DNA of 64,000 nucleotides from Macrostomum lignano (taxonomy: Eukaryota): NCBI GenBank assembly GCA_002269645.1, contig NIVC01001635.1, positions 124,001 to 188,000 on the forward strand, given 5' to 3'. Position 1 is the stretch's first letter; the number at the start of each line of letters is the position of its first letter. The position numbers and the translations under genes are program-made. Shown piece after piece: positions 1 through 34,829 of the stretch. A model generated the notes under the pieces. That model saw only the letters and a list, made by a program, of their open reading frames with translations, made no database searches and had not been told where the DNA came from.

Positions 1-392
1 CATCGAGGAGAACGCCGAAACCTGGGAAATCAGCACTCAGGACACCATGCTAAGTCATTACGAGACTTGCATCATCAGGTTGTCGGAAGAGCTGGAAGAA
101 GCGGCACAGGACGTCGCTCCGGATGACCTGCGCACAGGCTGGAAGGTGGGCTTGCGCTAGGCGGCGAAGGACGCTGGAAGGCGCTTTAACTGCTCGGCGG
201 CCCTACTACGCAACCGGCTGTACAAATTGAGAATTTCTGTGGAGGTCCCCGACTTCATCGAATCTTCGGGTAGGTTCTTTCTCCACGAACAGCCTTCCAC
301 CTAGAAACTCCAGAGACATCCGTGTTTCCGAGCTCGTTTCAATCCCCGAGGAGCCTCCGGGGGCCTTTGAGCGCGACGCTAACAATTCTGTT

Positions 393-1277
393 ATGATTAT
401 TGATGAAGGGGCTGGACCCGTTGAGCCAGTGTCTATGGATGCGTCTTCCGTTTGGGCGACACCGACACTTTATGAGGAGCCAAGCATGTTCAGTCATACC
501 GAAGAGAGGCGCAGAGATGTTTCCACGTCCCCAAGATCCACCACTGAATCTTGCGAGCCGAGGGCTCAAATACGGTGTCTGACTGCCTGTGCTCAGGTGT
601 CAGACACGAAGGGGGTCTGTGATCAGACATCCCCACCTGCAGCTGATCTGGACACCGAAGACGACGGCCAACTCCTTGCCAACATATTTTTGAATTTTCT
701 CGCGGTTGGGTCGGATCTCGCTCAAACAAATGCCTCGACTACTAGGTCTTACATTCACAATTAGCCGAAAAAGAACTGGAAGTTTTCGGCTATCGAGAAG
801 GAGACAGTGATAATTGGTGATGAGAGTTTACCTCAAACTGAAGCGGAGTATACGGACATCCATTTTGAGATCTTCCCGAACTTGAGGGCAGGGAATTTGA
901 TCAAGGTATTACGTGAGAAGACCGACGATCCCTCTACAGGGGTAAAAGCGGTCATTCTGTTCCCTTGGGGACAGGACCTATCAAGAAAGTTCGAGGGTGC
1001 CATCGACAAACAGCTGACAACTATCTTCAATCATTGCCGCAAAGCCTTTCCGTAGGCTAAAATCTACACCTTTGACTCGTTGGTGAACATTGGGGAACCA
1101 GAGGACGTCCGAACAACTGCTGAGAAGGTTAGCCGACATCTTCGAAGACTCAACCTAAAAGAACACGTTGCTCTGTCACCTCGGGAACTGTCATTCCAAC
1201 AGAACCTGGTCTCCTTCACTGAGGAGTCCTCTAGGAGGGTTCTCCAATTAGCACTCGCTAAACTAACAAAAAACTAA
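393..1277 (+). pseudogene. PLE upstream reading frame with SGNH/GDSL esterase-like domain (interrupted by TAG at 762-764 and 1053-1055)
   Basis: ORFs 393-764, 807-1055 and 1080-1277 share one frame. Motifs VIIGDESL, IFPNLRAG, VKAVILFPWGQD and FP*AKIY resemble SGNH blocks I-III as seen in retroelement ORF1 esterases. Confidence 0.55.
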
Positions 1278-1309
1278 ACAGTGCCGGAACTGCGGAGAGC
1301 AGCCCGGTG

Positions 1310-3326
1310 ATTAACCTGTCAACCTCACTCTTTCAAAAAGCGAAATTAAAGTGATCGAGAAGGGAAAGAATTTCGTTCCCGCGCCAACTATTATGAGCTC
1401 CCAAATCCTGACCGATTCCATCACTAGTCTCAAGCAGAGAATCGCTCTCAATTCGCTTCTGCAACGCCGCACGTGCGCGTTCACACCGCGAAAGTTCTTC
1501 TCTCGCCGCTCATCATTGCCCAATTTCAGCTTGGAAAAGTGAAGAACACATGAGGATCTTTTCGAAGCTCTTGACGGTATCAGCACTCCGAATTTCATTT
1601 ACAACAAATCAAATCTTCAGCAACACCAACAGGATGCGCTCCAAAATCTTCGCAACAATAATAGGGACACGTGGCCTATTCCAGGAGTGCCTCCAGAGAC
1701 CAATAGTCTCCGACTGCAGCTCAGAGAGCTACATGAGCGACAAATTCATTGACTGTTTTCTACAACCGATAGCGCAGGAACAAGATTCCTTTATCCGTGA
1801 CACCGATCATTTTCAAGCTTTAATTCAACAAGCTTTAATGACAAGGACAACGAGGTCTTTCTAGTAACAATGGATGTCAAATCTTTGTACACAAACATCC
1901 CAACTGACCAGGGGATGAACGCCGTGAAGAAGGCCTTTATTAATTTTCCTGAACCATCAAGACCTGACACTCAGCTGAGACTCTTGGACATCAACCTGAA
2001 CCAGAATGACTTCATCTTTGAGGAGCACCGATTCTTACAGGTGAAAGGCACCAGTATGGGAAAGGCCTTTGCGCCCGCCTATGCCAACATATTTATGGCT
2101 GAGTGGGAGTCCAGAGCCCTAAGAGTCGCTCCTTTCGCCCCTCACCTCTACAAGCGTTACATTGACGACATCTTTATGATTTTTACTGGTACGGAGGCAC
2201 AGCTAAGAGTTACACTTCCATCTCAACAGCTTTGACAGCAACATTCGTATCTCGATGGAGTATAGCAGAGAAAACATTCACTTTCTGGACTGCTGCATAT
2301 CGCTTACAGTGGAAGGCAATAAAAAGAGGCCAACTTGCTCTATCTACTTCAAACCCACAGACTCTTGCCAACTGTTAAACCCAGACTCTTTTCATCCTAC
2401 GCATACTTTTAAAGGCATTGTCAAATCTCAGTTCCTTCGCTATGCCCGCCGCGGTCTGCTGGGCATCCTCAAAAGACAGGGGTATTCTGTCCGAACTATT
2501 CGAGACGCAAAAACCTCTGCTCTCACTCAACTGGGTTACTACATGGACTGCCGGTGGGAATTTGGCTTTATTAGATGCAAAAATTCGAGCTGCCGCCTGT
2601 GTGAATAGCATGGTCAGTTTGGCCAGGTCTGCCCAGGCTCCAATGCCACTAAAATGGTCTACATAATCAATCAAAAAGTCCGCTGTGACTCCAGAGACGT
2701 GGTCTATGCGATTCTCTGTAGGACTTGTAATGGCCACTGCGTCTACATTGGGGAGACAGGTGGTGCTCTCAAGGTCAGAATACAAGCCCACCTGAGCGAC
2801 ATTAGGTTGGAAAAGACACGCCAGTGTCGAGACATTTTAACTCTGCTAACCACAGCCTTCATGACCTTCGCTTCATGGGCCTATGGTACCTGAGCACTGA
2901 GTGCAAAGCCGACAAGAAAGGAGCCCAGCGCCGTAGAAGGAACATGGAACAAAAATTGATCGGCCTGCTTTGCACCCGTTTCCCAAGTGGCCTAAACACG
3001 GTTGAAACGACCAATCATGCTTGCATTCCCATAGTGATTCCGCACACTGACCACTCTGCCCGCTTTGTACACGGAGTCCGCAGGTGATCGCAGACCGTGC
3101 ACGTGAGCTTGACACTGTGGCGGCGTACACCAGATTGCGCTTGATTCAAGACATTCTCTGTCCGTCTAAGCTGCACACTCAGCATTGCCACGCCGTAACC
3201 CATTTTCAGATCAATAAACTGCAACTACATTGTACACCCTGCTCAATTAGGAGCACGACGTGCGGCAAGGCACCCATCGGACTTTTAAACCTAATCAAAC
3301 TGATTTTTATCTCTCGCATTTATTAG
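1310..3326 (+). pseudogene. PLE reverse transcriptase + GIY-YIG endonuclease, disrupted
   Basis: ORF pieces 1351-1542, 1870-2235, 2255-2608, 2654-2893, 2824-3087 and 3084-3326 carry consecutive RT, thumb, Zn-linker and GIY-YIG motifs. Confidence 0.9.
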
Positions 3327-3384
3327 CTTTCTCGAATTTTTTCTCTGTACAATTTAAATTAAATCGAATTATAAACTTTACTTT

Positions 3385-3425
3385 TCAATCCTGACAAAGG
3401 CCAGGCAATAGGCCGAAATATTGGT
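3385..3425 (+). ncRNA. Hammerhead-ribozyme-like motif in the PLE 3' region (non-canonical core)
   Basis: CTGACAAA-GGCC-aggcaata-GGCC-GAAA-TATT at 3391-3422. Position and stem II/GAAA match PLE minimal hammerheads, but the core is CUGACAA instead of CUGANGA. Confidence 0.4.
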
Positions 3426-3578
3426 CACCTTCGAATTTAATCTGTTAATATAATCTTTGGTGTTTGCTGACTCTGGGTGAGCGCTTTTTACGTTGACGCG
3501 CTCGCTTCGCTCACACGTTAACGTTTTTGTAATTATCTATCTACCTATCTATTAATAAATCAATCAATCCACACCTAC

Positions 3579-6500
3579 CTGAGTGGAATTCCGAGCCAAG
3601 CTAAGATACTCGCTAGCGCGCTGCTGAATTTCCACATTGGAATTGCGCAGATTAGCGTCAGACTCAAGCACAGCGATAATGTCCTCGCGAATCTCCGGGA
3701 ACAGGTTCACTAATTTGATGTAGGCGCTCAACAGCAGGGCGCGGGTTGGCGGACTGCACAGGTGAAACTTGCCGTGCAGCAATTGGAATTGAGTTGAAGG
3801 CGAGCTGCGGGCATCTCCGGCAATGAGGTTGCCAAACTCGCCCAGAATGTAGCCGCCAACCTTCACCATGTTCTCGTGGCAGGCCGGAGCTTCCAGCGCT
3901 TCGAATACCGTCTTGGCCGCGTACGCCTGGCGGATTTGGGTAGGATGAAGACGCCACGTATTCATAGCAACGAAGACTGAAGATCATATATCAGCTTAAA
4001 TCTCTGTGACCTTCACAACCGTAACAATATAGATCAAGATAAACAAAACCCATGTGGCACATAGCAACACAAATCGAGAGCTAATAGACCATAGCAACCA
4101 AGCAACTAGGCTTGATTACTTTTTGCAATCAAGAAGCATGAGTCATAATTTGACTCTAACTGAGCCTTAGCAACTACCACTAGATGACCCGTAGCAACCA
4201 CGCCAACCACCTATCTGACCCTTAGCAACCCGCCTACCTGAGCCTTAGCAACCACTTACCTGAGCCTTAGCAACCACTTACCTGACACTTAGCAACCACT
4301 TACCTAACTCTCAGCAACCAACTATCTGATCCTTAGCAACCACTAAGCCTTAGCAACCAACTACCCGAGCCTTAGCAACTAACTACCTGAGCCTTAGCAA
4401 CTAACTACCTGAGCTTTAGCAACCACTTACCTGAGCCTTAGCAACTAACTATCTGAGCCTTAGCAACAAACTACCTGAGCCTTAGCAACCAATTTTACGT
4501 AACCCCGAGTAAGCAACACTTACCTGCACATCTTCGCGATTAATAACAATCTGGATAACTCGGTACCAAACCTCCTCGGAGACGAAATCACCAGCCAGTC
4601 GAATGAGATTGAGTATGGTGTCCACATACCAGGTATAATCGCTGGCGTATTTCTCGGCTAGGATGGCAATTTTGAGCACTAATTCGCCGCGAATAGAATA
4701 ATCGGCCGTCTCCAAATAGGTGAGCATCTCGCCGACGATCTCTTCGGCGTTGCTGCGATCGCACATTGCGTAGAGCAGATCGACAGCGCGCTGGCGAACT
4801 GACACGTCGCGCTCGCTCTGATTGCGGCAATGGTAGCAAAATTTATTAATTATTAGATGCTTGCTGACGTATCCGCACCATACTACTTATCCCATTCAAA
4901 GTAAGTAGAACGAAATATATATTTCTTAATTTGTTTAACATTTGCTGATTATTTGTAAAATACAGTTTTTACAATAATTAATCAACAAGAGATACGGTTT
5001 ACACTTCAAAATTGAGGCTTAATAAGTGCTTAGAACTCGAACAATTTAGGATGCTTAAAGATTTGATTAAATGATTAATACGGGATCTAGAATCCCAGGA
5101 AGCTGTGGGTTAATGCCTCACCTTCAGCGCCGTGACAACAGTCTCCTGGTGCCTCTTAACCGCATCGTGAGAGAACTCAGACGTGGCCAGTAAGCACATG
5201 CTCTCCAATGCCAGGTAGCGCAGGTTAGTCTCCCTATTGGATAGAAACTGGCCCAGTTGGCTGCAGGCCCTCACCAGAAGGCTCGGATCGCTGTCCATAT
5301 GAATGATCAAGCTGATCGCTTCGAATAATACGGCATTTTTAGCGTTCGAATGCTGCACTTTCTTAGATTTAGGCGGCTCAACCGCTTTGTTAAGAATGGT
5401 CTCCAGGCACTCTGCTAGGCGATTTCGCACCGTAGTGTCCTCTGGCGGCGGGTAGTTCTGCAGCAGCCGGAGCAGCTTCACTGATAGCCACGGCGCCGGC
5501 ACAAAGTAGTAGGTGTAGTCCTGAGGGTTTGCATTGGGTTTATTATTGGTTTATAAATTGATTATATAGTCCATGGACCAGGGGAGGAGGGCGCCACACA
5601 CCCTCATCTACCCCAGCTAATGCTGGCACCCATTTTTATAGTTGGCTGAACTGAAGCAGTGCAGAGTTAAGTGTCTTGCTCAAGGACACAAATTGTTGCA
5701 AGTTGGGTAGAGAATCGAACCCCCGACCTTCCAGTCATGAGTCCAACGCTCTATCTACTAGTCAGTCAGTCAGTCAGTCAGTCAGTCAGTCAGTCAGTCA
5801 GTCAGTCAGTCAGTCAGTCAGTCAGTCAGTCAGTCAGTCAGTCAGTCAGTCAGTCAGTCAGTCATTCAGTCAGTCAGTCAGTCAGTCAGTCTCACCTGCA
5901 GGTCAGTATAGGACGAAGTGACAATCCGAGCCAGCCTGGAGATACTAAGCGACACGCAGCCTTTGAAATCGTCCGGATTCCGTTTAACCAGAGCTTCAAT
6001 CAGAGACACGGCGGCGGTCACAACGCCCATGTGCTGATCGTTGAGCAGGTGGATAACACGCGATGTCCAGTCGCCAATCGGCACCATCTCCGGAGCTGTC
6101 CTGAAGAGCTTCAACAGGCACAGAGCGGCGCTCTGTTTAACAGTATCGCCAGCGTCTCCCATCACTAGGAGCTTGGGAATCTCTGGGGCGAACATTTCCG
6201 CCATCTCTTTGCTGCCAATATTGGCGATGCACTCCAGAGCGAGGTTGACGTGCACCGGATTGCGGGAGGCCAGGTCGTTCTTTAGATTCTGCTGGACCAG
6301 GCGCATGAGCTCGTTGTTCTCGCTTATTAGTACCGAGATGAATAGGTAGCCCTGTCGGGGAAGTGAGGAGGAGTACGGTTTATCTGCAACTCGATACGCG
6401 TAGCTTACCAAGGTGTTCCATGACAAACATTACTTCTATCGATGGCTAACAGAATGCGATGCTATTGCTATTGAAAGTGTCGCTATGACTGCCAAGTGTT

Positions 6501-7446
6501 TATATAACCACATGGTTGTTGCTATGGCCAAGAGGTTTCTACGGTTTACCAGGTGTTGCTATGGCTGCCAAGAGGTTTCTATGGTTACTAGGTGCTGATA
6601 TGGCTACCAAGAGGTTTCTATGGTTACCGGGTGTTGCTATGGCTACCAAGAGGTTTCTACGGTTTACCAGGTGTTGCTATGGCTGCCAAGAGGTTTCTAT
6701 GGTTACTAGGTGTTGTTATGGCTACCAAGAGGTTTCTATGGTTACTAGGTGTTGTTATGGCTACCAAGAGGTTTCTATGGTTACCGGGTGTTGCTATGGC
6801 TACGAAGAGGTTTCTATGGTTGCCAGGCGTTGCTATGGCTACCAAGAGGTTTCTATGGTTATACCGAATTTGGCTATGGCTACCAAGAGGTTTCTATGGC
6901 AACGAAATACTTCTTAATTTCAGAGTGTTGCAATGACTACTATCCATGCCAGCACCTACGAGAATTGTTGCTAGGAATGCAATGTACTTGCATAGGAACA
7001 GTGTATGACAATAAATGATGAACGTAAGGAACTTATAGTCTAGATATAAAACAGACAACAAGCCAATAGTACTTACAATCTGTTTCTCAGTGTACTTGTT
7101 CGAATTCAGCAGATTAACGGCCTCCATGTGACCAAAATCGATGTCATTGCCCAGAAGAAAAATAAACAGCAGTTTGCAAACATATTTCTTCTTCTGGTAG
7201 CCATCTAGAGCTTTGTCGCCTTTGAATTTGGACCGTATATTGGCTAGCTCTTTGTTGATTCGTTTCTCTTCGGCTTCCTTGCTTTTGCCTGCCAAATTTA
7301 AGTTATGCATTATTTGTGTCTTTGAAAAGAGAACTTTAAGAAGCAGTTAACAGAATAAATTAGTAAAAGAATAGTGTAATCTTACAATTTCTGATATCAG
7401 AAATGAAGACTGCAAGTCCGCGCATGGAGTCTTTTACAGCAGGCAT
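3579..7446 (-). CDS. AP2A: AP-2 complex subunit alpha (alpha-adaptin), exons 1-6; gene continues beyond the window start
   Basis: Exons 7446-7386 ([20 protein letters not shown]), 7288-7077 ([47 protein letters not shown]), 6351-5896, 5520-5122, 4817-4524 and 3926-3579, all with GT-AG junctions in frame; near-identical to known alpha-adaptin N-terminal trunk. Confidence 0.97.
4200..4492. repeat. Intronic minisatellite, ~22-bp unit (CCTTAGCAACCACTTACCTGAG)
   Basis: About 13 degenerate tandem copies read directly. Confidence 0.9.
5568..5760 (-). mobile_element. tRNA-derived SINE with CORE-like central domain (copy 1)
   Basis: Reverse strand reads ...GGACTCATGACTGGAAGGTCGGGGGTTCGATTCTC (B box) followed by TGTGTCCTTGAGCAAGACACTTAACTCTGCACTGCTTCAGTT...TAAAATGGG; homologous to the copy at 51841. 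Confidence 0.8.
5760..5890. repeat. (GTCA)n microsatellite
   Basis: About 32 tetramer copies abutting the SINE head. Confidence 0.97.
6505..6905. repeat. Intronic minisatellite, 39-bp unit (ATGGCTACCAAGAGGTTTCTATGGTTACCGGGTGTTGCT)
   Basis: About 10 tandem copies; generates spurious [13 protein letters not shown] ORFs. Confidence 0.92.
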
Positions 7447-8803
7447 GACTGATCCAACTGGTTGAGTAGTTTGGCTGCAAGTGTGAAGGCATTATATAGA
7501 TTAAAAATACCTTAACATTGAATGCATCATTTTGCTTTTGTAGAATAGAGAAAACAAGCACAATTTTATACAAGATTTTACTTGGATTATTTTTGTCAAA
7601 AATAGTTTTAATAAACAGAGTATAACAAATAACTATAACATTTACATTAATTTACATTAACAAAGTATAAAATTTATACTATTGCGCATAGAAACATGTT
7701 TCTTTCAAATGCCTACTCTAGATACATATTAACTAACATACCAAAGAAAATATGTTTTTATTTTCTTTGTCATTAAATATTGTCAAAAATTAAACTATAC
7801 ACATCATGTTGATTGCATTAAAATTTAAACTTATAAGCTTAGCTAGGTTAGCCAGTTGCTGCCTATATATATTCATATCCATAGGCCTTACTCTTATAGA
7901 CCATTTAACTAGAACTATCTACCTTTTATCTAGACTTAAGGATTTAGAAAGTATATTTAGGCTTATACTTTTTCTTAATCTAATGAAAGCATTATTCATT
8001 TTTTTTAAATCGGCACACTTAAAATTTTAGAAAATATTAAGCCTAGTTCATTAAGTTTCATTAACTGTATACAAGGGGTTTTATAAAACAAACATGCTAA
8101 TAAGGCTTAGTCAGCAAAGATAAATGAAGATGAAATCTATTAATAGTAAGCCTTTTGTCATATACTTATATAATAAAAAAGTATTTAAAGTACATCTTTT
8201 ATAATTGTATTTTCTTATTGCATATTGCAAAAGTGCATAATTTATAAGTTTGTTATTCTATATGAAAAATAAATTCAAAAATGATAAAGTATATAACTTT
8301 AACATACATAGTTGAAAAAACTTTATTTAGTCCCAGAATACAAACCTAGTCCTGTGACCTATAATTTTTTCCCCCAACAGACATAGCATATATTAATTAT
8401 ACAATTCAAACTATAGACTTGCACCTATTTTCAAATAGATTTGAATATCATTTTTTGTATGCCAAATAGAACTTTTTAAATTCAAGCATGCCAAATATGC
8501 ATGTCAATAAATTATAAAAGGCTCATGTATGTCACAAAATTCTGGCATATAGGACACCTTCCTAACTATGGTAGGTTAAAAGACATTAAAAGAAAAAATT
8601 GATATAAATATCAAGAAAAAATAAAAACAATCCTTTTGCACTAAAATTTATGTTAATAAATCAAATAGTAGCACAACCAGGGGGCGGGGTAGGGGGGCAG
8701 TTGCCCTCCCTTTAGGTGGAGAAACTTAAAAAAATCAAAGAGGGACCAAGCAAATTTTTGCCAATAACAGAGCCTGAGAAAGAACCATCCCTTTGCCCCC
8801 TCC

Positions 8804-9298
8804 TGGCCACACTCTGGATCATGTAGTATATGCCCAAAAATTCAGGTGTGCATTGGCCTTGCACGCCAAAATTAGGCGTGCACAGTTGGCATGCATCACT
8901 CCTGAGAAAATAGTATGCATGCACACCTGGCATGCACTTTATAGAACCACGCGTAAGAGTTATTGTAAAGTTGAAAAAAGAATAACAAAGTTCAATTTCA
9001 AGTGCAAATTTCAAGCATTCCGATTTTTTCAAGCTTGTAAAAGAGCATTTAAACAAATCTCTGTGTGTATAAATTTTCTGCTGTAAATAATATCGTTGAA
9101 AGAGCATAAAAAGCAACCAAATTATTTGGTAATAAGGCTTTATTATGCATTTTATTGTCACAACATAAAAAAGACCATTTATTGTTGCAACACCAGCGTC
9201 TTTTTGAGAATGGGCATGCACTTAATTTTTTTTGGTGTGCATTTGTGATTATTCAATTTTTGTTTGAGCATGCACCCAGCATGATCTATACTATGGCC
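8804..9298. mobile_element. Old dispersed repeat / probable MITE, homologous to ~60010-60488
   Basis: Collinear diverged matches (e.g. CATCACTCCTGAGAAAATAGTATGCATGCAC vs CATCACTCCTAAGACAATAGTGTGCATGCAT; CATGATCTATACTATGGCC vs CATGATCTAGACTATGGCC); imperfect terminal inverted repeat GGCCA...GATCATG. Confidence 0.55.
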
Positions 9299-9758
9299 TC
9301 CTGGGACTTTAGGCCTACTCTCTAGAACCTATCCCCCCCTCAAAATTGCTGGTTGAACTACTAAAACAAAAAGGTATTTTCATATTTTTAAAGGCACATC
9401 AGCTTAACAAAAAAAATAATATTCAATTTGCTTATTCTTATAAAATAAATATACTAGGCTAGGCCCTATGACCTGGAGTATTTTACTGTTTAGATTAAAA
9501 CCTCATTTCTGTTTTTAATGTCTAATTATAATTTATAACTAAGGCACTAAAAAGCAAACTAGGGTACTTGATAGCACAGATATGGGATACCTTCTCTAGA
9601 ATAATTAGATGTTTTATTGCCTAGCATAGGCCCTATTAATAGCACTATTTTTATAAGTGTACACCAAGTCCCTGTATTACAGAATGATAAAATATTAAAA
9701 TTAAATTATTAAAAAGATTGGATTCTACTCTCAAGTCAAAGCTTGCTGAAGGAAAAAG

Positions 9759-11129
9759 CAAGGACTTCTAGACTAACAGGACGTAAAACTCAAAGATCGT
9801 GCAATTTTTTAGAGGCCACGATTTCCTGGAAAAAATACACTGCGGAGATAGGAAAAAATCAGTTTTTTGTCACAAAAACAGTGATTTTATTTGATCTGGG
9901 GCAGTGAAGACTACCATTCTTTTAATTTAACATGCACAACATGTTACTCTTATATTTTCATATAGCTGTGTATTGAAGTTTTCATTTTCATGTTGTTTTT
10001 ACTTCATTTCATAAGCCCAAAGTTGCAAATACTCACAAGTGGCATTAGCCAAACTTTTTGTGCTGTTCCTTTTTTGAATCAAGTATATTTGTAATGAAAA
10101 CTGTGCATGTAGGTACTCTTAATCTTTTATTGTAGATATAGTTCCATTTCAATGCATATATAAGGCCTAGTAACTATTTAATTCCTAGATATACATTCCA
10201 ATATATAATATGATATAAGAGTTACTATTATAGTTAATAGCTCAATTAGTTTTTATTTACTATAGGAGGTATAGATTTAATAAGTTAAACTATAAGGTCA
10301 ATAAAAGTCCTTCATTTATAAAAATCATAATTGCATATTATTATTATATGAATGATTTAGAGTTTAGACAGATAGATACTACCATTTTTATTTCTCTCTC
10401 TTCTTTCTTCTCTTTAGCTAGAATCATGTTTAAAAGAATTGAAAAACTGAAATAAATTAGGCCTATAAATTGTAAATGTAAGTATGCCCCACTTATTAAG
10501 AAGATTTTGGAATCCATAGATCAAATATCATTATTCATTAGGCAAGAAAATGAATAAGACAAACATGCCTTGTATTCAGTCATTTTAGTTAGGGCCTATT
10601 TTACCAATAAAAGGATGTGTGATTCCATATATAAAGCCTAATTTTCAAGAATCTTTGATAGGTCTTAGACTCATAACTCTTAGACATTATACCTAGTAGT
10701 AATAGTAGACAGGTATAACTAATACTAGTAGGCCTAGTATAGTTACTAACCATACAATAAAAGATTAAGAGTACCTATATGCACAGTTTTATTACAAATA
10801 TACTTGATTCAAAAAAGGAACAGCACAAAAAGTTTGGCTAATGCCACTTGTGAGTATTTGCAACTTTGGGCTTATGAAATGAAGTAAAAACAACATGAAA
10901 ATGAAAACTTCAATACACAGCTATATGAAAATATATTAGAGTAACATGTTGTGCATGTTAAATTAAAAGAATGGTAGTCTTCACTGCCCCAGATCAAATA
11001 CAATCACTGTTTTTGTGACAAAAAACTGATTTTTTTCTATCTCCGCAGTGTATTTTTTCCAGGAAATCGTGGCCTCTAAAAAATTGCACGATCTTTGAGT
11101 TTTACGTCCTGTTAGTCTAGAAGTCCTTG
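9759..11129. mobile_element. Non-autonomous DNA transposon with ~340-bp terminal inverted repeats and 8-bp TSD (hAT- or P-superfamily type)
   Basis: 9759-~10096 is the near-perfect reverse complement of ~10791-11129; ends CAAGG...CCTTG; GGAAAAAG is duplicated at 9751-9758 and 11130-11137. Confidence 0.9.
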
Positions 11130-11694
11130 GGAAAAAGCTGAAATAAAAGGTAAAACATGGCTAAAAAACAAGAATGCTGAAAACAAGAATGGATAAAAAA
11201 TGCACAGAATTGTTAATGTTTACAGAATACTATTTGCACATTGCCATAAAGACTTTTGATCAAAAAACAGTCTACAAATTTTACTATACATTAGGCCCAG
11301 CTATTTATTTTAAACATGTATTATAATTTTCTGATAGTGAGTTAGTTGCGAGTCTCGAAATTTAGTCAGTCTCGCCGTTTATATTACGAAATATTTTTGC
11401 AGGAAATGTCCTATCTTTTAAAAAAAGCTAAACATGTTGTGTTTATCACTTTAAGCAATAAGTTTCTAACACATTTTTTAATTACATGTCAGAATTAAAA
11501 GAGTAAACAATTTACCTCTTTTTTAATAAATGTTTGTGTTCTTTTTTGTTTTACCACCTGTATCCAGAGTCTATATATATGAAATCAAATTAGACATTTT
11601 CGTCATAATAATTTGTTTACCCTCTGGGTATGCAATTTTCTCAAAACCAGCCGACCTCAAGGCAGTCGCGTTGTAGCCTCTACGGGAACCAAAC

Positions 11695-13607
11695 ATGGCG
11701 AAGCTTTCTTTAAGGTAAAATACTCTTTGAACGAGATGGCCACACTACCTTTTGTCTTGTGTAAATGTTGGTTGCAATCAGACATCCCAAAATTATATTA
11801 TTTGCCAGTGTCTGGACTCTGAATTTAATTATAAATTAAATTATGATTACGATTATAAATTTTGCTGCCGCTTCATTGGTACTGTAGAATAAAATTTCTT
11901 CAGATTTTTTATCGCTTTCTTTCCCCAAAAATAATATTTTTATGAGGCTTCGGCTTTTGGTTCTTTAAATCTAATTAGTAATTAATAATTATAAAACCAA
12001 TGGGCATGGCTTCGATAGCCGAACTTAAATGAAATAAGCTTTTTTACTTTAAACTTCACTCCAAAGACTTGCAGCTGTGGAGAAAAATTCAGGGACATAT
12101 GTCGGTTATTCAGCTGTGATCTATTTCTATTAAGTCGAGTGTAATAACTTTGCATTTTTAGATGAATCGACAAAGTCTAACAAATGTTAATTTTTTGCAT
12201 ATTAGATGGTTGGTATATTATTTATTCTAATCTCCCCCTCCCATCAGGAGCACGGAGTTAGAGAACTTCTGCTCGCGAACGTCTGCCGGGCCTGGGTGGC
12301 GTTTTTGATGCTCCCCGGGCCGCCTTAGTTGACAGCGCGGAGTTGTTGACAGAGGGCAGCGGCCTGGGGGAATCAAAACAGCCCCCTGTCACCCATGTTA
12401 GCGGACAGTCGTTTGCTGCCAGAAGATCGGGCAGTCAGCAGCAGCAGCAGCAGCGAGATGAGACTGTGGAGACCAGACCAGAAGACCAGAAGAAGCAGAA
12501 TAAGTTGGCTCATTTCGTCATCGGCAGCGACAATTTCGGCTACAACGATGTTGGAGACTATTACGAGAATGAGAACACCTTCGATGATGACGATTGGGAA
12601 GCTGCAGAGTCGGCGGTTGAGCAGCAAAGCAGCAACCAACAGCCTACTCTGCCTTACAATCTAGTTAGCGACAGTCCGGACGGCTCCGGCCGAGCCATGG
12701 TGCTCCACCTTGGCGAGACTGAGCTGATTGGCGAAAGTCTCAAGCGAGAACTGACCGATATGTTGGAGTTTGCCGAAGAAGAACTGGAATGCCGACGCGT
12801 GCTGCTTGGCATTAGCCGGCAGAGGCAGGACAAAGGTGAGCGGAGCGAATAGTACACTATTAATTTCACAATACTTTTGATCAGCTTACAGTTTTTTCAA
12901 TTGACGCTGATTAAACGCACTAAAATTTTGGTTGAACATCCGTCTGAAGCTTGTTGCTAGGCGGCTATCTAAGATTGGTTGCTAATCTCTGAGCTCTTCT
13001 ACGATGGTCACTGATCATTTTCTAAGATGGTCGCTGAGCAGTCCTCTGATGGTCGCTAAGCAGTCCTCTAAGATGATCACTGAGCAGCCCTCTAAGATGA
13101 TCGCTGAGCAGTCCTCTAAGATGATCGCTGAGCAGCCCTCTAAGATGATCGCTGAGCAGCCCTCTAAGATGATCGCTGAGCAGCCCTCTAAGATGATCGC
13201 TGAGCAGCCCTCTAAGATGATCGCTGAGCAGCCCTCTAAGATGATCGCTGAGCAGCCCTCTAAGATGGTCGCTGAGCAGCCCTCTAAGATGGTCGCTGAG
13301 CAGCCCTCTAAGATGGTCGCTGAGCAGCCCTCTAAGATGATCGCTGAGCAGCCCTCTAAGATGATCGCTGAGCAGCCCTCTAAGATGGTCGCTGAACAAT
13401 TCTTATTTAATTACCAAACTCATTTATTTACGAATTCCAATTTAGTTGCAAAAATTGTCTGCACATTTAACTTTCTCAGACACCCTGATGAGGACGTTGC
13501 CTTTTCTTGGCTTTGCCTGCTACGAGCCTCGCTCCGGTTGCGCTGACCATCTGACCTGTCTGGACACAGACGGCTTCGCTTACATGGCCTACGCCATTTC
13601 CGATTGA
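11695..13607 (+). CDS. OAZ: Ornithine decarboxylase antizyme, expressed by +1 programmed ribosomal frameshifting
   Basis: Exon 1 11695-11714 (aaacATGG context) + exon 2 from 12248 give ORF1 MAKLSLRSTELENFCSRTSAGPGWRF* ending TTT TGA at 12303-12308. The +1 frame (GAT at 12307) runs to 12835 (SLKRELTDMLEFAEEELECRRVLLGISRQRQDK), and exon 3 13480-13607 encodes DTLMRTLPFLGFACYEP...FAYMAYAISD*, matching the antizyme C-terminal domain. Confidence 0.93.
12303..12391 (+). promoter_or_regulatory. +1 frameshift site (UUU UGA) and 3' stimulatory RNA pseudoknot
   Basis: Stem 1: 12312-12323 pairs with 12359-12370 (12 bp including 2 G-U). Stem 2: 12347-12357 pairs with 12381-12391 (10 of 11). Loops 23, 1 and 10 nt. 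Confidence 0.8.
13060..13395. repeat. Intronic minisatellite, 24-bp unit (AAGATGATCGCTGAGCAGCCCTCT), in OAZ intron 2
   Basis: About 14 tandem copies; explains the MIAEQPSK ORF. Confidence 0.95.
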
Positions 13608-15099
13608 TTTTGCTGAACATCCCGCTCGCAGAAGACTGAGTAAAGAACGAATAGAAGTTTGGCTGTAAGAGTGTGAGGAAAAAATCGCCATGTTTTGGTT
13701 AGAATTTTTCTTTAATTGTGTGTTGTGCTCTGTAGTGTCCGACTAATATTTAACATTTTCCTCTCTCATCCCTTTTTATTTCTATTTATGCATCTTTTAC
13801 GAAGTAAGAGCGTAAGTGTATTTTTTTCAAAGTGCGTTTAACTTAAAAAATCAATAATCAACAAAACTTAGCGAATACGAAGTAAAACAAACAACGATTA
13901 AAACAAAACATTTCTACTCAAAAAATTAAACTGTACGTTTCTTTTTGCGTTTAATTTTAACTTATTAATTTTAACATTTTTCACTTTGTAGGTACGCGCT
14001 GTGTATTATGTTGTATTTTTGCTTTAACTTGCAACAACCCAGAGGGTGGGACGCGGAGCTCTCGGGCTGCTTTGATCGTTATCAGATCTGTAAAGATATG
14101 TGGGCGTAAAGGCTCGCTTGTCTTTACCTGTGTACGAGATTAATTAAATTTGGTTTTAGAAAGCTCATAGTTTGCTTTAACCAGTTGTTGCAAAGAACAA
14201 AACGCAGTTCGGGTTTTAAATCTTTAAGCGAAGCATGCCGGAGTTTCATTTTAGTTTTTTTACGTTACTTTATTTTTTGTTACATTTCTATTTTTATTTA
14301 ATAAAAAAGTTCAAATCAATCCTTTGTTTTAACCTGAAACTCTTGTTGGCCTAATTCTGCAATAATTGAATTCAGAGCAAAGCGCGGTTGCGTCATCCGT
14401 TCATTCGTTAATTATATTTTTTGTTTTAATTTTCATTCTATTACATGCACATCACCTTCTGGAATTTATTTACGGAAGACGAAAATTTTGCAGGCTATTT
14501 TTCTTTGCGTCATATAGTGTAATTTCCTAAGTTTTATTATGTTAGCATAGCTGAAGTTGAAGTACACAATTGGCACTAATTGTTGTGACGGTGTAGCGCG
14601 TCACATATTAATTTTAATCAATCATTTTTTAATAATATACTATTTCTGCCACGTGCTTTTGGCGATGCGTCATTGAGTTCATTCAAAATTTATATTCTTT
14701 ATCGGCAATTCTTTGCATTGTTTATTAGTGAAATTTTGCATTACGTATATATACTCAGCAACATTTGACAGCAGTATTGACTTTTGAGTGACTCAACTTG
14801 CGCCACGCGACGCAAAGTTGGGCTGGGTGAGGAGGGATTGGGAAGAGCGGAGGGTGAAGAATGGTTGGATTGAAGCTTCCGCCCGGTTTTCATTGTTTTT
14901 TTTCAAAAAATTTTTATTATCAAAATGGTTGGCCAGTAGATTGATGCTGTCGAAAAACATGCTCACTTGGGCAAAGGGTGGCGTCTTTTCAATGTTGTTC
15001 CGAATACAAAGACAACAACAAAATGCGTTGTCAGCCAATCAGGCGAGTCATGAGAGGCAAAGACAGCGTCGCCACAGGGCGCGTTTCAGCTTCAGTGCC

Positions 15100-15240
15100 T
15101 GCGCGCGAACCTAGGCCGCACCGCCGGTAGCGTCCGGGGCGCCAGCATCGTCGAAACGCCTGCCCTCGCCGGTAGGGTGCCTGCAGCGTCAGCAGCAGCA
15201 CCTCCTGCACCGGATGCGGGCAGTAGGACTCGGCTCGGAT
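15100..15240 (-). mobile_element. 3' fragment of RTE-type non-LTR retrotransposon
   Basis: AESYCPHPVQEVLLLTLQAPYRRG parallels AEQYCPEPLQDVLLVSLQGPRRL at the C-terminus of the RTE copy at 19683-20426. Confidence 0.65.
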
Positions 15241-15424
15241 CAACACACAAAATACATGTAGCACAATCATATTCCATAATGCATGTATGTACGGGTGTAC
15301 ATGGGGGCCAATAGCCTTCCTTATACATGTACATGTACCTTTTGTCTCGTTAATGTACATGTACCTCTTATCTTTCCAATCGATTGAGGTTATTGTCTAA
15401 TTGAAACATTTCGAGTACATAATG

Positions 15425-15763
15425 CAGGGGCGTCTCCCCCTGGATTTTATGGTGGGGCTTGGCCAAAGCCATGCAAGAATTTAACATGTACGCTCGTACA
15501 TGTACATGACTAAATTCCTACATATCCATTATTTTAAAAATCGGTGTTGTCAGCACTCATTTTAGCGCCGCAGGCACTCATTTTGGTGCCGCGGGCACTC
15601 ATTTCGGCACCGCAGGCACTCATTTTAGCGCCGCAGGCACTCATTTTGGCAGGCACTCATTCTGACCCGTTGATGATTACCACAACGGGTCAGAAGATGG
15701 GGTGGGGGGGACAAAAGCATTGGCATGTCCCCCAGCTGTGCCCCCCAGGTAGCGACGCGCCTG
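15425..15763. mobile_element. hAT-type MITE with internal 21-bp tandem repeat
   Basis: Termini CAGGGGCGTC...GACGCGCCTG; flanks ACATAATG / ACATTATG (7 of 8 TSD); internal GCGCCGCAGGCACTCATTTT repeats; related copy inverted at ~37850-38120. Confidence 0.7.
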
Positions 15764-16141
15764 ACATTATGTAATCACTATTACAACCCAGTCATTTCGG
15801 ACCCCGGAACAGGTTAGCAAAAAGGGCAGCTGCCTCCCCCCTACCAGTCATCTAGATCGGGGGCGATGCCCCACTCTTAAAAAATTCTCAACTGCAATGA
15901 GGGAACCTATTTAGTATTTACTATGGCGGAGGTAAAATATTCGCCAAAATAGCAAACTATAAAATCTCGCCTGCGGCTGCTAAAACCTCATCTTCCTGTC
16001 ATGGCAAGTAAAAATCCAGGAATTAAACGATGATGCAATCCTGAAATTTGATAAAAAAAACTTTGGTATTTCGTTAGGTACATAATATAAATCCCACAGC
16101 CCGGATTTAGAGGCCAAATGCCAGGATTTCGGGATCCTCGG

Positions 16142-17359
16142 TGTCGTATCGCGTGACTCAGTCTGGAACAGAAGGCCGGCGGCGCTGTTTCCGCTGCTTG
16201 TCGACCGGCAGCCAAATGTCCCTTCGCAGACAAACACTGTTTTAACTGCAGCAAAGTCGGGCACACCGCGAGGCGGACGCGTTCAGCGCGGCAAAGCAGC
16301 TGCTCACGTAGCTCAGCGTCCTAGTTCACTATAACGCTGCAGAAGAGCTCTACCAAGATGGCGACGCATCGTACAACCGAGTGGACTCGTTATATTCCAC
16401 TGTCGTGTGTCGAGGCCATGGACAAGCCGATCGCCTACGCTTCGTGCAGTCTCAGCTCAGCAGAGAAAAATTACTTCCAGCTGGATAAGGAGGCCTTGGC
16501 GCTGGTTTTCGGTGTCAAAACAAAATGAATCGGGACATTGAGGCCAAGGAAGGGAGCTGCCCGGACTACCAGCGAGCCGGACCAGAAGCTCCGCCTCAGC
16601 TATGGCCGCTAATAGCGCTGTCCACGTCGATTTCGCTGGTCCCGTCCAAGGTTGAATGCTGTTGCTGGTGGTCAACTCCTACTCAAAGTGGCTCGATGTG
16701 TATGTGACGACAGCGACGACAACTTTCGCATCAGTGGAAAAGCTGCGACAGAACTTCAGCACTCATGGACTACTCATCTCAGACAATGGGCCCTGCTTTG
16801 CCAGCTTCGATTTTGACGCCTTTTGTGCCAAGAATGGAATTCGGCACATCTGCACGGCACCCTACCATCCGGTTTCCAATGGTCAAGCTGAGCGAGCGGT
16901 GCAAACCGTTAAGAACTCCCTGAAGAAGCAGGCCAACGACGGCAGCTCCCTGGAGACCCAGCTGGCCAGATTCCTGCTCAGCTACCGTACAACACCGCAT
17001 CCAACGACGCGAGTGGCACCGTGTGAGCTCCTGATGCGGAGCTTGGACGCTGCGTAGCCTGCTCGACGTACCGAGGCCAGACGTCACCAAGCGAGTTCTC
17101 GAGAGCCAGGAAAAGCAGAAGCAGCAGCACGACTCGGGCGCGCAGAGTAGAGTTTTCGAAGAGGGCGAGGCGGTGTTCGTTTAAGACTTTAGCCGCGGGA
17201 ACGAGCGAACCTGGACATCGGCTATCGTGGTCAGCAACTGGTACAAGTGCATTCTGCCGAACAACCGGATGGTGCGGCGGCACGCAGAACAGATGCGGCT
17301 CGACAAGACAAGCCTGGGCCGCTGCAGACGAATCCTGAATCCAGCGGTGAGCTCAGGTT

Positions 17360-17399
<40 letters not shown>

Positions 17400-17880
17400 T
17401 CGCAGCCTCGACCGCTGCCGCAGCTGCAACTACCGGATCAAGGACCAGCACAAATTCTCAGAAGATCAAGCAGAGCTCGATCGATTTCCGTCCACCTAAT
17501 CTACGATGGGAGAGGTGTCGTATCACGTGACTCAGCAAGTGTACACTGAGTACACTCGTATTATTTTTATTGATCGACTGACTATAATTGTTTATTGAGC
17601 GTGTGACTTATTCTCTCTTAGTGTGTGCATTCTTTTAAACCCCTTTTGCTTTTAAGCTTGTCATGCAGTGTACGTGTGTGTTTGTAAGTCTTATAGCGCT
17701 AATGATTTTTTCATACGTTCGTTTTTATTAAATAAATATCGAATGGTAAGCTTCAGAGCTCAAGTTTCTATTTCTCGCACTAAACAGCTATAGAGTTGTC
17801 TCACCCGGGACCAGGGATTGACTTAGAACTAGAAGACCTAGATAATGTACATGTAAAATTAAGTTTCTACTTAATCGACA
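16142..17880 (+). mobile_element. Ty3/Gypsy LTR retrotransposon remnant (RNase H fragment, integrase, PPT, LTR)
   Basis: RT-RNaseH remnant KPIAYASCSLSSAEKNY...LDKEALALVFGVK (~16425-16520); integrase LLISDNGPCFAS...TAPYHPVSNGQAERAVQTVK (16656-17057); polypurine tract GATGGGAGAGG 17505-17515 then TGTCGTATC; same LTR start at 16142; possible LTR end CGACA at 17880. Confidence 0.85.
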
Positions 17881-19624
17881 AGTAACTGTGTATAATTTCA
17901 TCTAGAACGTGTAGATAACTCAGTAGTTGTTACGAGCTAGAGCTACATGTACGAGTACCTACTCTAGTAGCATCTCTAAGGCAAACTAAAACACATTTTC
18001 CCCATACTGATCGAATTGCAAAGCATCGAGGACGAGGACGGATGTTTTAAGGATAGGCCGATTTAGGCCAATCTCTGAAGCATTTACATGTACATGTACA
18101 CGTGCAGCTCTCGTCCTTACCTGCATGTACATGTACCTCTCAGCCCGATTTAATCCCACAGATCACCTCATTGGTATCCCCCTGTAATTGATCCAAGCTG
18201 CTGACCATATTGCCCTATTTGAAGTTGAACGGACGCCTCTTTACTTACGAAGAATACCCTCCAGCAATTTATTCTGAATAGTATTATTAATTTACGAGTC
18301 ATCAATTAACAATGTTTTATTGGTGCTGTCTGCTCTAACGTAATGTAACGCTCATACGAGCGTATTTAGCTACATGTGCGGCTACATTTGCATGTACTGT
18401 ACATCTACGTCTGTAGCATGGGGGCCGCCCCGGGGGGGAGGGTCCGTAGGCCCGTACAGTATACAGAGAAAATCTAAAGCAAACTAAACGGAAAATTCCA
18501 CTCCAACTCCGATAGTGACTGGATGATATGTATATGAGAGAGAGCGAGAGAGCGCGAGGGAGAGAAGAAAACTAAAATCAGGCGATGGAAATTTCCACGC
18601 GGCCTTGTAGAGCAGATAGGAAGGCTCGGTCGGCTGCTGCCGTTTTTATATTGCCTTGTGCCTTTAAGCCTAAGGCCAGCCAGGCAAAAACCTCGTCTCT
18701 CGTTTTTTTTTTCACTTTAATCGCTCTTACACTATTTGGATAATACCAGCTGCCACAGCCAGTTAAAAGCAATTATATCCAATTTAACAGTTTTAATTAA
18801 CTAGTGTGTACTGTGGGTGAAACTTAAAGTATGCTAATTCTTGTTAAACTAGGGGCTCGCATACTTCTCGCATAAAAAAGCTCGCATGGTGCCCTCGATC
18901 TCAGCCGCTGTGGCGCCCCAATTCACCACAGTGGTGGCACCCCAGAAGTACTGTGGACTGGCGCCCCTCGATGTTGGCGCTCCTCGATGCTGGCGCCGCC
19001 ATAATAAATACGCGCGGCTCTCCAATAAATATTCTTGGCTATAAACCCCTGCATGCATGATGCATGATATGTACATGTATGTGTACTTTTATCCACAGTA
19101 GCGTCAGACGATCACGGGACTTCAGAAGGAAAATTCACGCGGGATGGGAACGGGAAATTGAAACTTTCGAAGAGTGCATGAAGACTAATCTCTTCCTAAA
19201 GTGCATTGTTGATGCTGGACTGCAAGACGCCTGTGCCAAGATAATCCAATTTCCGATCTTGTCTGGTGTGGGCAACGTAAAATTCTAGGTTAGGCCCCAA
19301 GAGTTTTATTGATCCAGGGCAGCTAGGGGCCACATCCTGCAGGGAGGGCTTAGGGAGGACGACGCCCGGCCATGCTCATTTTCTCAGTTTTCCACATCAT
19401 ATGACTGCAGTCTGTAGTGAGCTACGTATGCGTGTAATTCTGCCTTGCTTGAGTCGGCTATATACTGCGCGCTAATTAATTGTTTGCTTCTGTATTTTGC
19501 AAAGTATAAAATAATAAGAGTTGCAACAAATTCGTTACCGATTTTTTTATTTTAGATTGAATTAAATGGTTACGAAGATTGGTTTGTAATAATTCGATCA
19601 CTAATACACAACATGTTCATTGTT

Positions 19625-31544: not shown

Positions 31545-32480
31545 GTCCGGTCCCGATTCCAGGAATCCCAATCCCGACTCAAAGATCCCAATCCCGATTC
31601 TAAGGATCCCAATCCCGACTCAAAGATCCCAATCCCGATTCTAAGGATCCCAATCCCGACTCTAAGAATCCCAATCCCGACTCTAAGGATCCCAATCCCG
31701 ACTCTAAGAATCCCAATCCCGATTTTAAGGATCCCAATTCCGACTCTGAGAATCCCAATCCCGACTCTAAGAATCCCAATCCCGATTTTAAGGATCCCAA
31801 TTCCGACTCTAAGGATCCCAATCCCGACTCTAAGAATTCCAATCCCGACTCTAAGAATCCCAATCCCGATTTTAAGGATCTCAATTCCGACTCTGAGAAT
31901 CCCAATCCCGACTCTAAGAATCCCAATCCCGATTTTAAGGATCCCAATTCCGACTCTAAGGATCCCAATCCCGACTCTAAGAATTCCAATCCCGACTCTA
32001 AGAATCCCAATCCCGATTTTAAGGATCCCAATTCCGACTCTGAGAATCCCAATCCCGACTCTAATAATCCCAATCCCGATTTTAAGGATCCCAATTCCGA
32101 CTCTAAGAATCCCAATCCCGACTCCAAGAATCCCAATCCCGATTATAAGAATCCCAATCCCGACTCTAAGAATCCCAATCCCGACTCTAAGAATCCAAAT
32201 CCCGATTTTAAGAATCCCAATCCCGACTCTAAGAATTCCAATCCCGACTCTAAGAATCCCAATCCCGATTCTAAGAATCCCAATCCCGATTTTAAGAATC
32301 CCAATCCCGACTCTAAGAATCCCAATCCCGATTCTAAGAATCCCAATCCCGATTCTAAGAATCCCAATCCCGATTCTAAGAATCCCAATCCCGATTCTAA
32401 GAATCCCAAGCCCGATTCTAAGAATCCCAATCCCGATTCTAAGAATCCCAATCCCCATTCTAAGAATCCCAATCCCCAAT
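31545..32480. repeat. 21-bp minisatellite (AAGAATCCCAATCCCGACTCT)
   Basis: About 44 copies. Confidence 0.95.
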
Positions 32481-34592: not shown

Positions 34593-34829
34593 AACTTGAG
34601 AACTGCATTGAATAAATCTGTTAGATTAGATTGGAGGCCCAAGTTCAGAATGAACCCTGTCATTATTCATAGAATCATTTCTATAACTAACGCCATCTTC
34701 CAGGTATCCAGCTCTGTGAAATGGGTTCTGAATTACTTCAAAAGTCTCCGTGATTACCTTCCAGGATGGCCCTTCAATTGTCACATGAATCAGCTTTCAA
34801 GACCCATTAAAGTCGTCTGTAAACACCCT

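Follow-up and report, generated by a model that had tools for sequence, protein, structure and literature searches.

Frameshifting in antizyme genes is textbook recoding, and Macrostomum lignano is a regeneration and stem-cell model. Antizyme mRNAs were surveyed by Ivanov & Atkins (NAR 2007), who list UUU-UGA for Platyhelminthes, in Table 1 and in the text, and name M. lignano as a UUU-UGA antizyme (PMC1874602). The same survey reports class II pseudoknots in Platyhelminthes and conservation of UGG-UGC-UCC-UGA from human to S. pombe (PMC1874602). UUU-UGA probably has independent origins in several lineages, and CUU-UGA had never been seen in a natural antizyme gene as of 2007 (PMC1874602). The M. 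lignano UUU-UGA antizyme site is not new; it was catalogued in that year.

We analysed a window of 64,000 nucleotides, corresponding to positions 124001–188000 of M. lignano contig NIVC01001635.1. Coordinates are those of the window and all features lie on the forward strand. The locus is, with high probability, the ornithine decarboxylase antizyme gene of M. lignano, expressed via a +1 shift at UUU-UGA. At least three near-identical copies, this one included, are present in the M. lignano genome; sequence L007 is identical to window positions 6697–19607. Species, gene and UUU-UGA site are all the same as in the 2007 entry, and there is no difference in kind (PMC1874602). Added here are the exon/intron structure, a three-copy comparison, pseudoknot coordinates and the identification of faulty public models.

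Apart from that entry, close described systems include invertebrate antizymes with a class IIa 3' pseudoknot. The type example is Crassostrea gigas (Ivanov et al. 2004, as summarised in PMC1874602). Shared features are a predicted H-type pseudoknot that begins 3–4 nt past the stop of ORF1 and spans 78–90 nt, an extended loop 1 (24 nt in M. lignano and 36 nt in related mRNA L012), a one-nucleotide hinge, an 11-bp G+C-rich stem 1 and a conserved 5' context. The shift codon differs, being UUU in M. lignano and usually UCC in the class. Vertebrate OAZ1 also has a short ORF1, a +1 shift at the codon before UGA, a G-P-x-W/UGG context, a 3' pseudoknot and a C-terminal ODC_AZ domain. However, the OAZ1 shift site is UCC-UGA and its pseudoknot is a compact class I structure of ~60 nt, and the N-terminal two thirds of the M. 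lignano protein are unrelated to it and predicted to be disordered. Antizymes of the C. elegans clade of nematodes share UUU-UGA but are without the 5' module B and have their own module E (PMC1874602). Outside the family, the autoregulatory frameshift of bacterial RF2 (prfB) is similar in that +1 slippage onto UUU/UUx occurs at a NUU codon in the P site, ahead of an in-frame UGA, with a frequency that senses the speed of stop-codon decoding. In prfB the protein family is different, the sensor responds to the level of RF2 rather than polyamines, and stimulation comes from a Shine-Dalgarno-like element located upstream, in place of a 3' pseudoknot. The resemblance to prfB is analogy, not membership.

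Reading frames and the antizyme domain

Exon 2 (12248..12835; GC 0.56) contains the last part of ORF1 with the shift site, as well as the pseudoknot and the bulk of ORF2. It follows an acceptor ending ctccccctcccatcAG, with the AG at 12246–12247. Spliced ORF1 has 26 codons (MAKLSLRSTELENFCSRTSAGPGWRF*) and terminates GGG CCU GGG UGG CGU UUU UGA. The shift site, 12303..12308, consists of UUU (12303–12305) and UGA (12306–12308), with U as the next nucleotide. Reading in the +1 frame from 12307 gives DAPRAALVD and remains open to 12835, where a GT follows at 12836. Intron 2 (12836..13479) has GT and AG boundaries and holds a 24-nt minisatellite, in a tandem array at 13021–13395. The coding part of exon 3 (13480..13607), preceded by tttctcAG, encodes the end of the antizyme domain and closes with a TGA stop at 13605–13607. 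The junction 12835/13480 is confirmed by antizyme 1, which aligns across it without gaps, and by the UniProt model. The shifted product is 244 amino acids in length, and the expected peptide across the shift is GPGWRF-DAPRAALVDSAELLTEGSGLGESK.

This anatomy agrees base for base with the initial annotation, which had described a hidden ORF1, a UUU-UGA site and an antizyme frame of about 244 residues opened by skipping T12306. The open reading frame list had indeed missed the arrangement; it contains no ORF1 and only a TTG-started piece of 169 amino acids (12343–12852). The layout is that of an AUG-started ORF1, with the AUG depending on the putative exon 1, whose stop overlaps a long ORF2 in the +1 frame. 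ORF2 has no start of its own upstream of the domain. Its frame is closed upstream of the shift site by a TAG at 12259..12261, and hence no upstream exon can feed ORF2 via the acceptor at 12246–12247. As had been proposed, no ATG occurs in the ORF2 frame until well inside it; the first is at 12697..12699, codon 157 of 244. ORF2 contains 145 ATG-less codons, for which the probability of being open by chance is ~0.002 at this base composition. UUU-UGA is among the recorded combinations of P-site codon and UGA, so its recognition as an antizyme shift site is borne out by the literature, including for M. lignano itself (PMC1874602). On this layout, the antizyme would be made solely through programmed +1 ribosomal frameshifting at UUU-UGA.

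The identity of the product was assessed by sequence and by predicted fold. Pfam ODC_AZ (PF02100) matches residues 152–241 at 51 bits (gathering cutoff 24.2) and covers profile positions 24–113 of 114. Matches to antizyme 1 structure chains were found using phmmer (~3e-5), with alignments that cross the junction between exons 2 and 3. AlphaFold gives pLDDT values of ~65–83 for the last ~100 residues, except in one low-confidence loop. The best five Foldseek matches in the PDB are all antizyme 1 (target-normalised TM 0.42–0.73), and sequence and predicted-fold matches include 4zgy, 5bwa and 1zo0. UniProt A0A1I8HV15, named "Ornithine decarboxylase antizyme" from Macrostomum lignano, is 100% identical to the ORF2 reading. 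The protein carries a C-terminal ODC_AZ domain with a predicted antizyme fold, and the antizyme identity first assigned from the letters is matched by Pfam, antizyme 1 and the UniProt name.

The putative first exon and the probable start of ORF1

Without splicing, the ORF1 frame is closed by a TAA at 12228 and has no ATG after it. Hence, an upstream exon is needed. We infer that this is a 20-nt first coding exon (11695..11714), comprising an ATG and 17 further nucleotides (ATGGCGAAGCTTTCTTTAAG) and ending in phase 2. The exon is well supported, yet its use is deduced from the sequence. The ATG (11695–11697) has a good initiation context, caaacATGG, and the exon is followed by GTAAAA at 11715, giving the donor AAG|GTAAAA. 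Intron 1 (11715..12247) is 533 nt long, AT-rich and has GT and AG boundaries. When 4.2 kb upstream were scanned, two of 55 phase-compatible ATG..GT candidates had at least 7 of 9 donor matches; this exon is one of them, and the sole one near the gene. An alternative first exon at 8501–8526 was rejected; it has a weak context, lies 3.7 kb upstream and adjoins an alpha-adaptin gene. For the initial proposal, which joined 11695–11714 to 12248 in phase 2, the sequence part stands, since ATG, GT, AG and phase all match, while use of the junction is probable.

The exon is preceded by a putative 5' UTR (11651..11694), about where a local GC island starts. The island has a GC content of 0.5–0.6, compared with ~0.25 in the flanks, and follows ttttctcaaaaccAG. 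An in-frame TAG is located at 11674–11676, 21 nt upstream of the ATG. Comparison with the homeolog L009 identified 19 substitutions and 3 indels in intron 1 but none in flanking exon sequence, including the putative 5' UTR. Exon 1 is identical in all three genomic copies, which also agree over the acceptor, ORF1, shift site and pseudoknot but have diverged in intron 1. Conservation of exon 1 is non-significant by itself (0 substitutions in 64 nt against ~2.3 expected). An exact-protein look-up of the UniProt-type ORF2 reading returned no gene on record.

The frameshift could be real and ORF1 start elsewhere, in another upstream exon or through spliced leader (SL) trans-splicing upstream of the start codon. 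We consider this unlikely, though it is the most credible of the alternatives. In M. lignano, SL trans-splicing affects about 30% of genes, and the 35-nt SL ends in AUG (PMC8629364), so the actual 5' end may lie elsewhere. At 11648–11650, a CAG preceded by a pyrimidine tract is a possible SL acceptor for the 5' UTR. In addition, ORF1 in related mRNAs has 39 codons, compared with 26 here, and shows little N-terminal similarity. However, trans-splicing at 12248 was rejected as the source of the ORF1 AUG; the SL AUG would land in the third frame and open a 27-codon ORF ending at TAG 12326–12328, not ORF1. The unspliced frame offers no start either. Finally, among the nearby candidates only 11695..11714 is in the right phase with both a good donor and a good initiation context, and it sits within the GC island, invariant among the three copies. 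A start at AUG 11695 remains our preferred reading.

Probable stimulatory context and predicted pseudoknot

The conserved 5' context, GCC GGG CCU GGG UGG CGU (12285..12302), encodes A-G-P-G-W-R. It is identical at 14–15 of 18 nt to the related mRNAs L001/L011, which have a CUU-UGA site, and L012, which has UCC-UGA. Identity to L010 is 11 of 18. UGG, in the region of module A, lies two codons before the shift codon, the same position as in UGG-UGC-UCC-UGA (PMC1874602). The GPxW-like context noted upstream in the initial annotation is present here as G-P-G-W.

Downstream, a predicted H-type pseudoknot occupies 12313–12390. It starts 4 nt after the stop, or 3 if U12312 pairs with G12370. The arms of stem 1 (11 bp) are CCCCGGGCCGC (12313..12323) and GCGGCCUGGGG (12359..12369). 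Those of stem 2 (9 bp and a mismatch) are GACAGAGGGC (12348..12357) and GCCCCCUGUC (12381..12390). Loop 1 is 24 nt and the one-nucleotide hinge is A12358. A hairpin in loop 1 competes with stem 2, sharing 3 nt with it.

Covariation in both stems is observed. For stem 1, all 11 pairs hold in 4 of 4 distinct sequences, with two two-sided and four one-sided changes. The minimum-free-energy folds also contain this stem in both species (z = -4.4 and -5.3). For stem 2, 9 of 9 pairs hold in every sequence, with two two-sided changes and a conserved A53/C85 mismatch. In total, 80 of 80 cells are paired across 20 pairs, four of which show compensatory changes; sliding the 3' partners reduces pairing to 39–58%, and these statistics are for four distinct sequences, with 12–17 of 500 shuffles reaching the observed values. 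Covariation is limited to four distinct sequences, as a third search for homologues, using a five-sequence profile, found nothing new. Synonymous third positions are identical at 17 of 18 codons across the pseudoknot, compared with 19 of 44 in the rest of ORF2 (p = 1.6e-4).

The start ~3 nt after the stop, the long loop 1, the single-nucleotide hinge and the covariation are those of class II (IIa). In this layout, the predicted element agrees with what has been published on the class II pseudoknot of invertebrate antizymes (PMC1874602). An Rfam scan of L007 and L001, with E up to 10, gave only chance-level miRNA and snoRNA matches. No Rfam match would be expected for an element of the invertebrate class II rather than of the vertebrate type.

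The proposed route to the protein is as follows. Ribosomes would initiate at AUG 11695 and read the 26-codon ORF1 across the 11714/12248 junction. With tRNA-Phe in the P site on UUU (12303–12305), and with UGA (12306–12308), which is decoded slowly, in the A site, a fraction would shift +1. The tRNA may re-pair, perfectly, on UUU 12304–12306, or U12306 may simply be skipped. Shifted ribosomes would then read GAU and continue through ORF2 to make the 244-residue antizyme. Unshifted ribosomes would terminate, releasing a 26-residue peptide. The 5' context GGG CCU xxx UGG and the H-type pseudoknot 4 nt after the stop are the probable stimulators. If the gene behaves like every antizyme studied so far, shift efficiency would rise with polyamine concentration. 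Domain homology suggests that the product would bind the ornithine decarboxylase monomer and send it to ubiquitin-independent degradation, closing a negative feedback loop.

Related mRNAs and public gene models

Conservation of the two-frame layout was evident in five antizyme mRNAs of other organisms. In each, an AUG-started ORF1 ends with UGA and an AUG-less ORF2 occupies the +1 frame. ORF1 ends GPxWx-NNN-UGA in L001–L006, L010, L011 and L012/13 (GPSLC in L010). In the same contigs, ORF2 is in the +1 frame with an upstream stop and no upstream AUG. The first ORF2 methionine of the related mRNAs is at codon 128–147, and the upstream stop is TAA. The nucleotide after UGA varies, being U, G or A.

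These comparisons bear on whether antizyme could be made without a frameshift. Translation might start at ATG 12697, giving 88 amino acids, or at a near-cognate CUG (12283 or 12292) in the ORF2 frame. The 88-residue product (residues 157–244) would keep most of the Pfam-detectable domain (match 152–241), and the CUG codons do lie between TAG 12259 and the shift site. However, eight other AUGs, in other frames, precede 12697 in the spliced mRNA. The 145 upstream codons are open and partly conserved as protein in the related mRNAs (APRA, LLTEGSG, QPPVT). In addition, the AUG-started ORF1 of every homologous mRNA ends with UGA exactly where ORF2 conservation begins. That precision defines the antizyme family (PMC1874602), and near-cognate initiation leaves it unexplained. 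We regard this alternative as very improbable. It is more improbable still, to the point of being negligible, that the apparent frameshift is an assembly error or pseudogene lesion caused by a 1-nt indel in the five-T run (12302–12306), although sequencing indels arise easily in such runs. All three genomic copies, each assembled separately, have the same sequence at the site, it was reported independently in the 2007 survey (PMC1874602), and related mRNAs from at least eight samples share the +1 arrangement with differing, non-homopolymer P-site codons. An assembly indel was rejected on the agreement of the three copies and the common layout.

Programmed frameshifting at UUU-UGA is thus the reading that we retain for M. 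lignano. The closest homologous mRNAs form two groups: L001–L006 (six RNA-seq runs) with L011 (an ENA assembly), and L010. Both keep the pseudoknot and 5' context but carry CUU-UGA or AUU-UGA, not UUU-UGA. The source accessions of these cassettes are SRR3745347, SRR3745356, SRR26183987-4003, SRR14039982 and ERZ3792527. The CUU-UGA of L001/L011 is literally the RF2 site. We found no report of a CUU-UGA antizyme site in the later open-access papers searched. If the CUU-UGA and AUU-UGA sites are natural and used, a reading to which we give somewhat less than even chances, the P-site codon would drift without constraint among NUU codons within one clade, against an unchanging set of stimulators. 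CUU-UGA, the bacterial RF2 shift site, would then also occur naturally in antizyme genes. The pseudoknot coordinates and the NUU-UGA series provide a small natural comparison set for recoding specialists.

The public M. lignano antizyme models are wrong. NCBI PAA65606.1 is an 88-aa "hypothetical protein" that starts at ATG 12697. UniProt A0A1I8HV15 is a Met-less fragment of 233 amino acids that starts at the codon right after TAG 12259. In NCBI all three gene copies are entered as 88-aa "hypothetical proteins", and the UniProt entries are Met-less fragments of 233 amino acids. These entries are the truncated and mis-started models that automated annotation had been predicted to produce. A corrected model would be join(11695..11714, 12248..12305, 12307..12835, 13480..13607) with a ribosomal-slippage flag, for all three copies. 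With the site in the literature since 2007, the impact on biology at large is small. The practical value is curation: the polyamine feedback regulator of M. lignano is mis-modelled in both NCBI and UniProt.

Structure and identity of the antizyme gene

The exon and frame structure given by the initial annotation for 11695-13607 matches the window sequence exactly. Its claim that the ORF track misses ORF1 also held. The mechanical ORF list contains only a TTG-started 169-aa fragment and ORF1 is missing. On the forward strand, ORF1 would start at ATG 11695, which is embedded in caaacATGG; a TAG in the same frame lies 21 nt 5' of it. The putative exon 1 donor, AAG/GTAAAA, lies 20 nt after the start of this ATG and the exon 2 acceptor (...ctccccctcccatcAG) ends at 12247. 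Conceptual splicing of 11714 to 12248 gives ORF1 as MAKLSLRSTELENFCSRTSAGPGWRF followed by the stop, with GGG CCU GGG UGG CGU UUU UGA as its final codons. The shift site comprises UUU (12303-5) and UGA (12306-8), on the same strand. ORF2 is open from 12307 to a donor at 12836, restarts at 13480 and stops at TGA 13605-7. The conceptual frameshift product is 244 aa.

This product matches Pfam ODC_AZ over residues 152-241 (51 bits; cutoff 24.2). Antizyme 1 PDB chains align to it without gaps over the proposed exon 2/3 junction. In an AlphaFold model, built from an input alignment of five sequences, the N-terminal ~130 residues are disordered and the last ~100 form an alpha/beta domain (pLDDT mostly 65-83). 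Antizyme 1 structures take the first five places among the PDB matches of the model; GNAT-fold acetyltransferases come next. The nearest database protein is a UniProt "Ornithine decarboxylase antizyme" from Macrostomum lignano. The window sequence equals GenBank NIVC01001635.1 (assembly GCA_002269645.1), with window position 1 at contig position 124001.

The prediction that automated annotation would truncate or mis-start the protein proved literally true. UniProt A0A1I8HV15 has 233 aa and no initiator Met; its first residue is the codon directly 3' of TAG 12259. It agrees at 100% of residues with the reading of the ORF2 frame, also over the 12835/13480 junction. At NCBI, PAA65606.1 and PAA91652.1 are entered as "hypothetical proteins" of 88 aa that begin with ATG 12697.

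Much of intron 2 is occupied by a minisatellite (13021-13395; 15.7 copies of the 24-nt unit TCTAAGATGATCGCTGAGCAGCCC, 95% matches), which yields a spurious 180-aa ORF (13004-13546). In L009, a homeologous M. lignano copy of the locus, the array is ~389 nt longer. Hence, copy number varies among gene copies. Upstream and divergent, the minus strand carries alpha-adaptin (AP-2 alpha) exons at 1-7440. The called product has 985 aa with Adaptin_N, Alpha_adaptinC2 and Alpha_adaptin_C domains, and the gene adjoins antizyme at all three copies. Dense minisatellite arrays with 15-40-nt units, some >1 kb, occur throughout 4200-64000 (for example 27914-28552, 31551-32476, 34820-35828, 46472-47687 and 52700-53315). 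These arrays account for the marked GC and AT skews seen locally at 28-36 kb, as well as for many of the long spurious ORFs. The window also holds a retroelement reverse-transcriptase ORF (RVT_1; 44855-46009, plus strand), an EF-hand exon (51105-51701, minus strand) and an exon with a TSNAXIP1_N domain (56428-57177, minus strand).

Initiation and the need for a frameshift

TAG 12259-61 shuts the ORF2 frame on the upstream side. The first ATG of this frame, at 12697, is codon 157. The 145 open codons ahead of that ATG have a chance probability of ~0.002 at this base composition. In the spliced mRNA, eight AUGs in other frames lie 5' of ATG 12697. Read unspliced, the ORF1 frame meets a stop at 12228 without an ATG. 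We compared two further copies in the same assembly: L008, which differs at 1 position in 4 kb, and the homeolog L009 (96%). Neither copy differs from the window in the putative 5' UTR, exon 1, acceptor, ORF1, shift site or the 110 nt beyond; L009 intron 1 differs by 19 substitutions and 3 indels.

The putative exon 1 (11695-11714) is the least secure part of the gene model. The candidate is favoured because an upstream AUG is required. Within 4.2 kb upstream there are 55 phase-compatible ATG..GT combinations, and only two of them have a donor agreeing at 7/9 or more consensus positions; the second of these candidates, rejected here, is 3.7 kb away. The 11695-11714 exon has a strong initiation context, lies inside a GC island and is the same in all three genomic copies, although the absence of substitutions in 64 nt around it is by itself non-significant.

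About 30% of M. lignano genes receive, by trans-splicing, a leader whose last three nucleotides are AUG (PMC8629364). Joined at 12248 as an ORF1 start, the leader AUG would open the third frame instead. Hence, trans-splicing at this acceptor is not a working alternative to exon 1. Such a leader would give a 27-codon third-frame ORF with its stop (TAG 12326-8) within pseudoknot stem 1. Trans-splicing into the antizyme 5' UTR is possible; a leader at a possible acceptor 11650/11651 (site 11648-11651) would give an upstream ORF of 21 codons that overlaps the start of ORF1.

In the proposed mechanism, tRNA-Phe would sit on UUU with UGA in the A site, and slow termination would permit the +1 move. 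Re-pairing on UUU 12304-6 would be perfect. The 5' context and a 3' pseudoknot probably aid the shift. By analogy with established antizyme family knowledge, polyamine dependence and ODC targeting are assumed. The UUU-UGA antizyme gene is confirmed as an observation, and its interpretation is supported.

A predicted 3' pseudoknot and related mRNAs

Using profile searches, we collected fragments of antizyme ORF2 from other organisms, on contigs derived from RNA, and compared their DNA. In all these related mRNAs, ORF1 starts with AUG, has 34 codons or more and ends in UGA exactly at the onset of ORF2 conservation. ORF2 is in the +1 frame, with a stop upstream and no AUG until codon 128-147. The "M" of the database proteins is a GTG picked by a prokaryote-style gene caller.

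Between M. lignano and the related mRNAs, nucleotide identity 3' of the stop is far above what protein conservation explains. In identical-residue codons, third positions agree in 17/18 cases within ORF2 codons 1-29 versus 19/44 elsewhere (Fisher p = 1.6e-4). In an alignment of four distinct sequences, the conserved blocks are predicted to form an H-type pseudoknot on the plus strand. The 11 bp of stem 1 join 12313-12323 to 12359-12369. In stem 2, 12348-12357 and 12381-12390 form 9 bp and leave a conserved A/C mismatch. Loop 1 has 24 nt and the hinge is one nucleotide, A12358. All 80 cells are paired; sliding the partners 1-3 columns reduces this to 39-58%. Nine of 20 pairs vary, four with changes on both sides, and column shuffles reached the observed values in 12-17 of 500 cases. 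The double compensatory changes all come from the L012/L013 mRNA. In nested minimum-free-energy folds of both species stem 1 is the core (z = -4.4 and -5.3). Rfam families gave no match to the region. Ivanov & Atkins 2007 describe class II antizyme pseudoknots, also present in Platyhelminthes, as having a hinge of one nucleotide, a long loop 1 and a length of up to ~90 nt (PMC1874602); the M. lignano topology fits this verbal description.

M. lignano has a predicted hairpin within loop 1 (12328-12350; GUUGACAGC / GUUGUUGAC), which is shorter in flatworm-like related mRNAs and missing in L012. It overlaps the stem 2 5' arm by 3 nt and could be an alternative conformer.

Shift sites differ among the mRNAs. 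ORF1 ends in GPGWRF at UUU-UGA in M. lignano. The closest homologous mRNAs end in GPLWCL at CUU-UGA-G (L001:166-171, also L002-L006, and L011:164-169; seven contigs from seven samples) or GPSLCI at AUU-UGA-A (L010:165-170); all share the M. lignano pseudoknot and 5' context. L012/L013 end in GPLWCS at the canonical UCC-UGA-U. These JGI metatranscriptome contigs (L012:1-640, L013:1-619) carry an AT-rich antizyme mRNA with the same pseudoknot topology and a 36-nt loop 1.

Significance for antizyme genes

The M. lignano UUU-UGA site was recorded earlier (PMC1874602). Hence, the finding is a correct rediscovery of a known antizyme. Our additions are the exon structure in the genome, exact coordinates and covariation for the pseudoknot, proof of the errors in current public models, and the relatives with CUU-UGA. 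A useful outcome would be correction of those models by curation. The 2007 survey listed UUU and AUU as Platyhelminthes antizyme shift codons, and CUU-UGA, the bacterial RF2 shift site, was absent from natural antizyme genes then known (PMC1874602). Among the open-access papers searched we found no later report of it in a natural antizyme. The CUU-UGA relatives are a minor lead on the diversity of shift sites.
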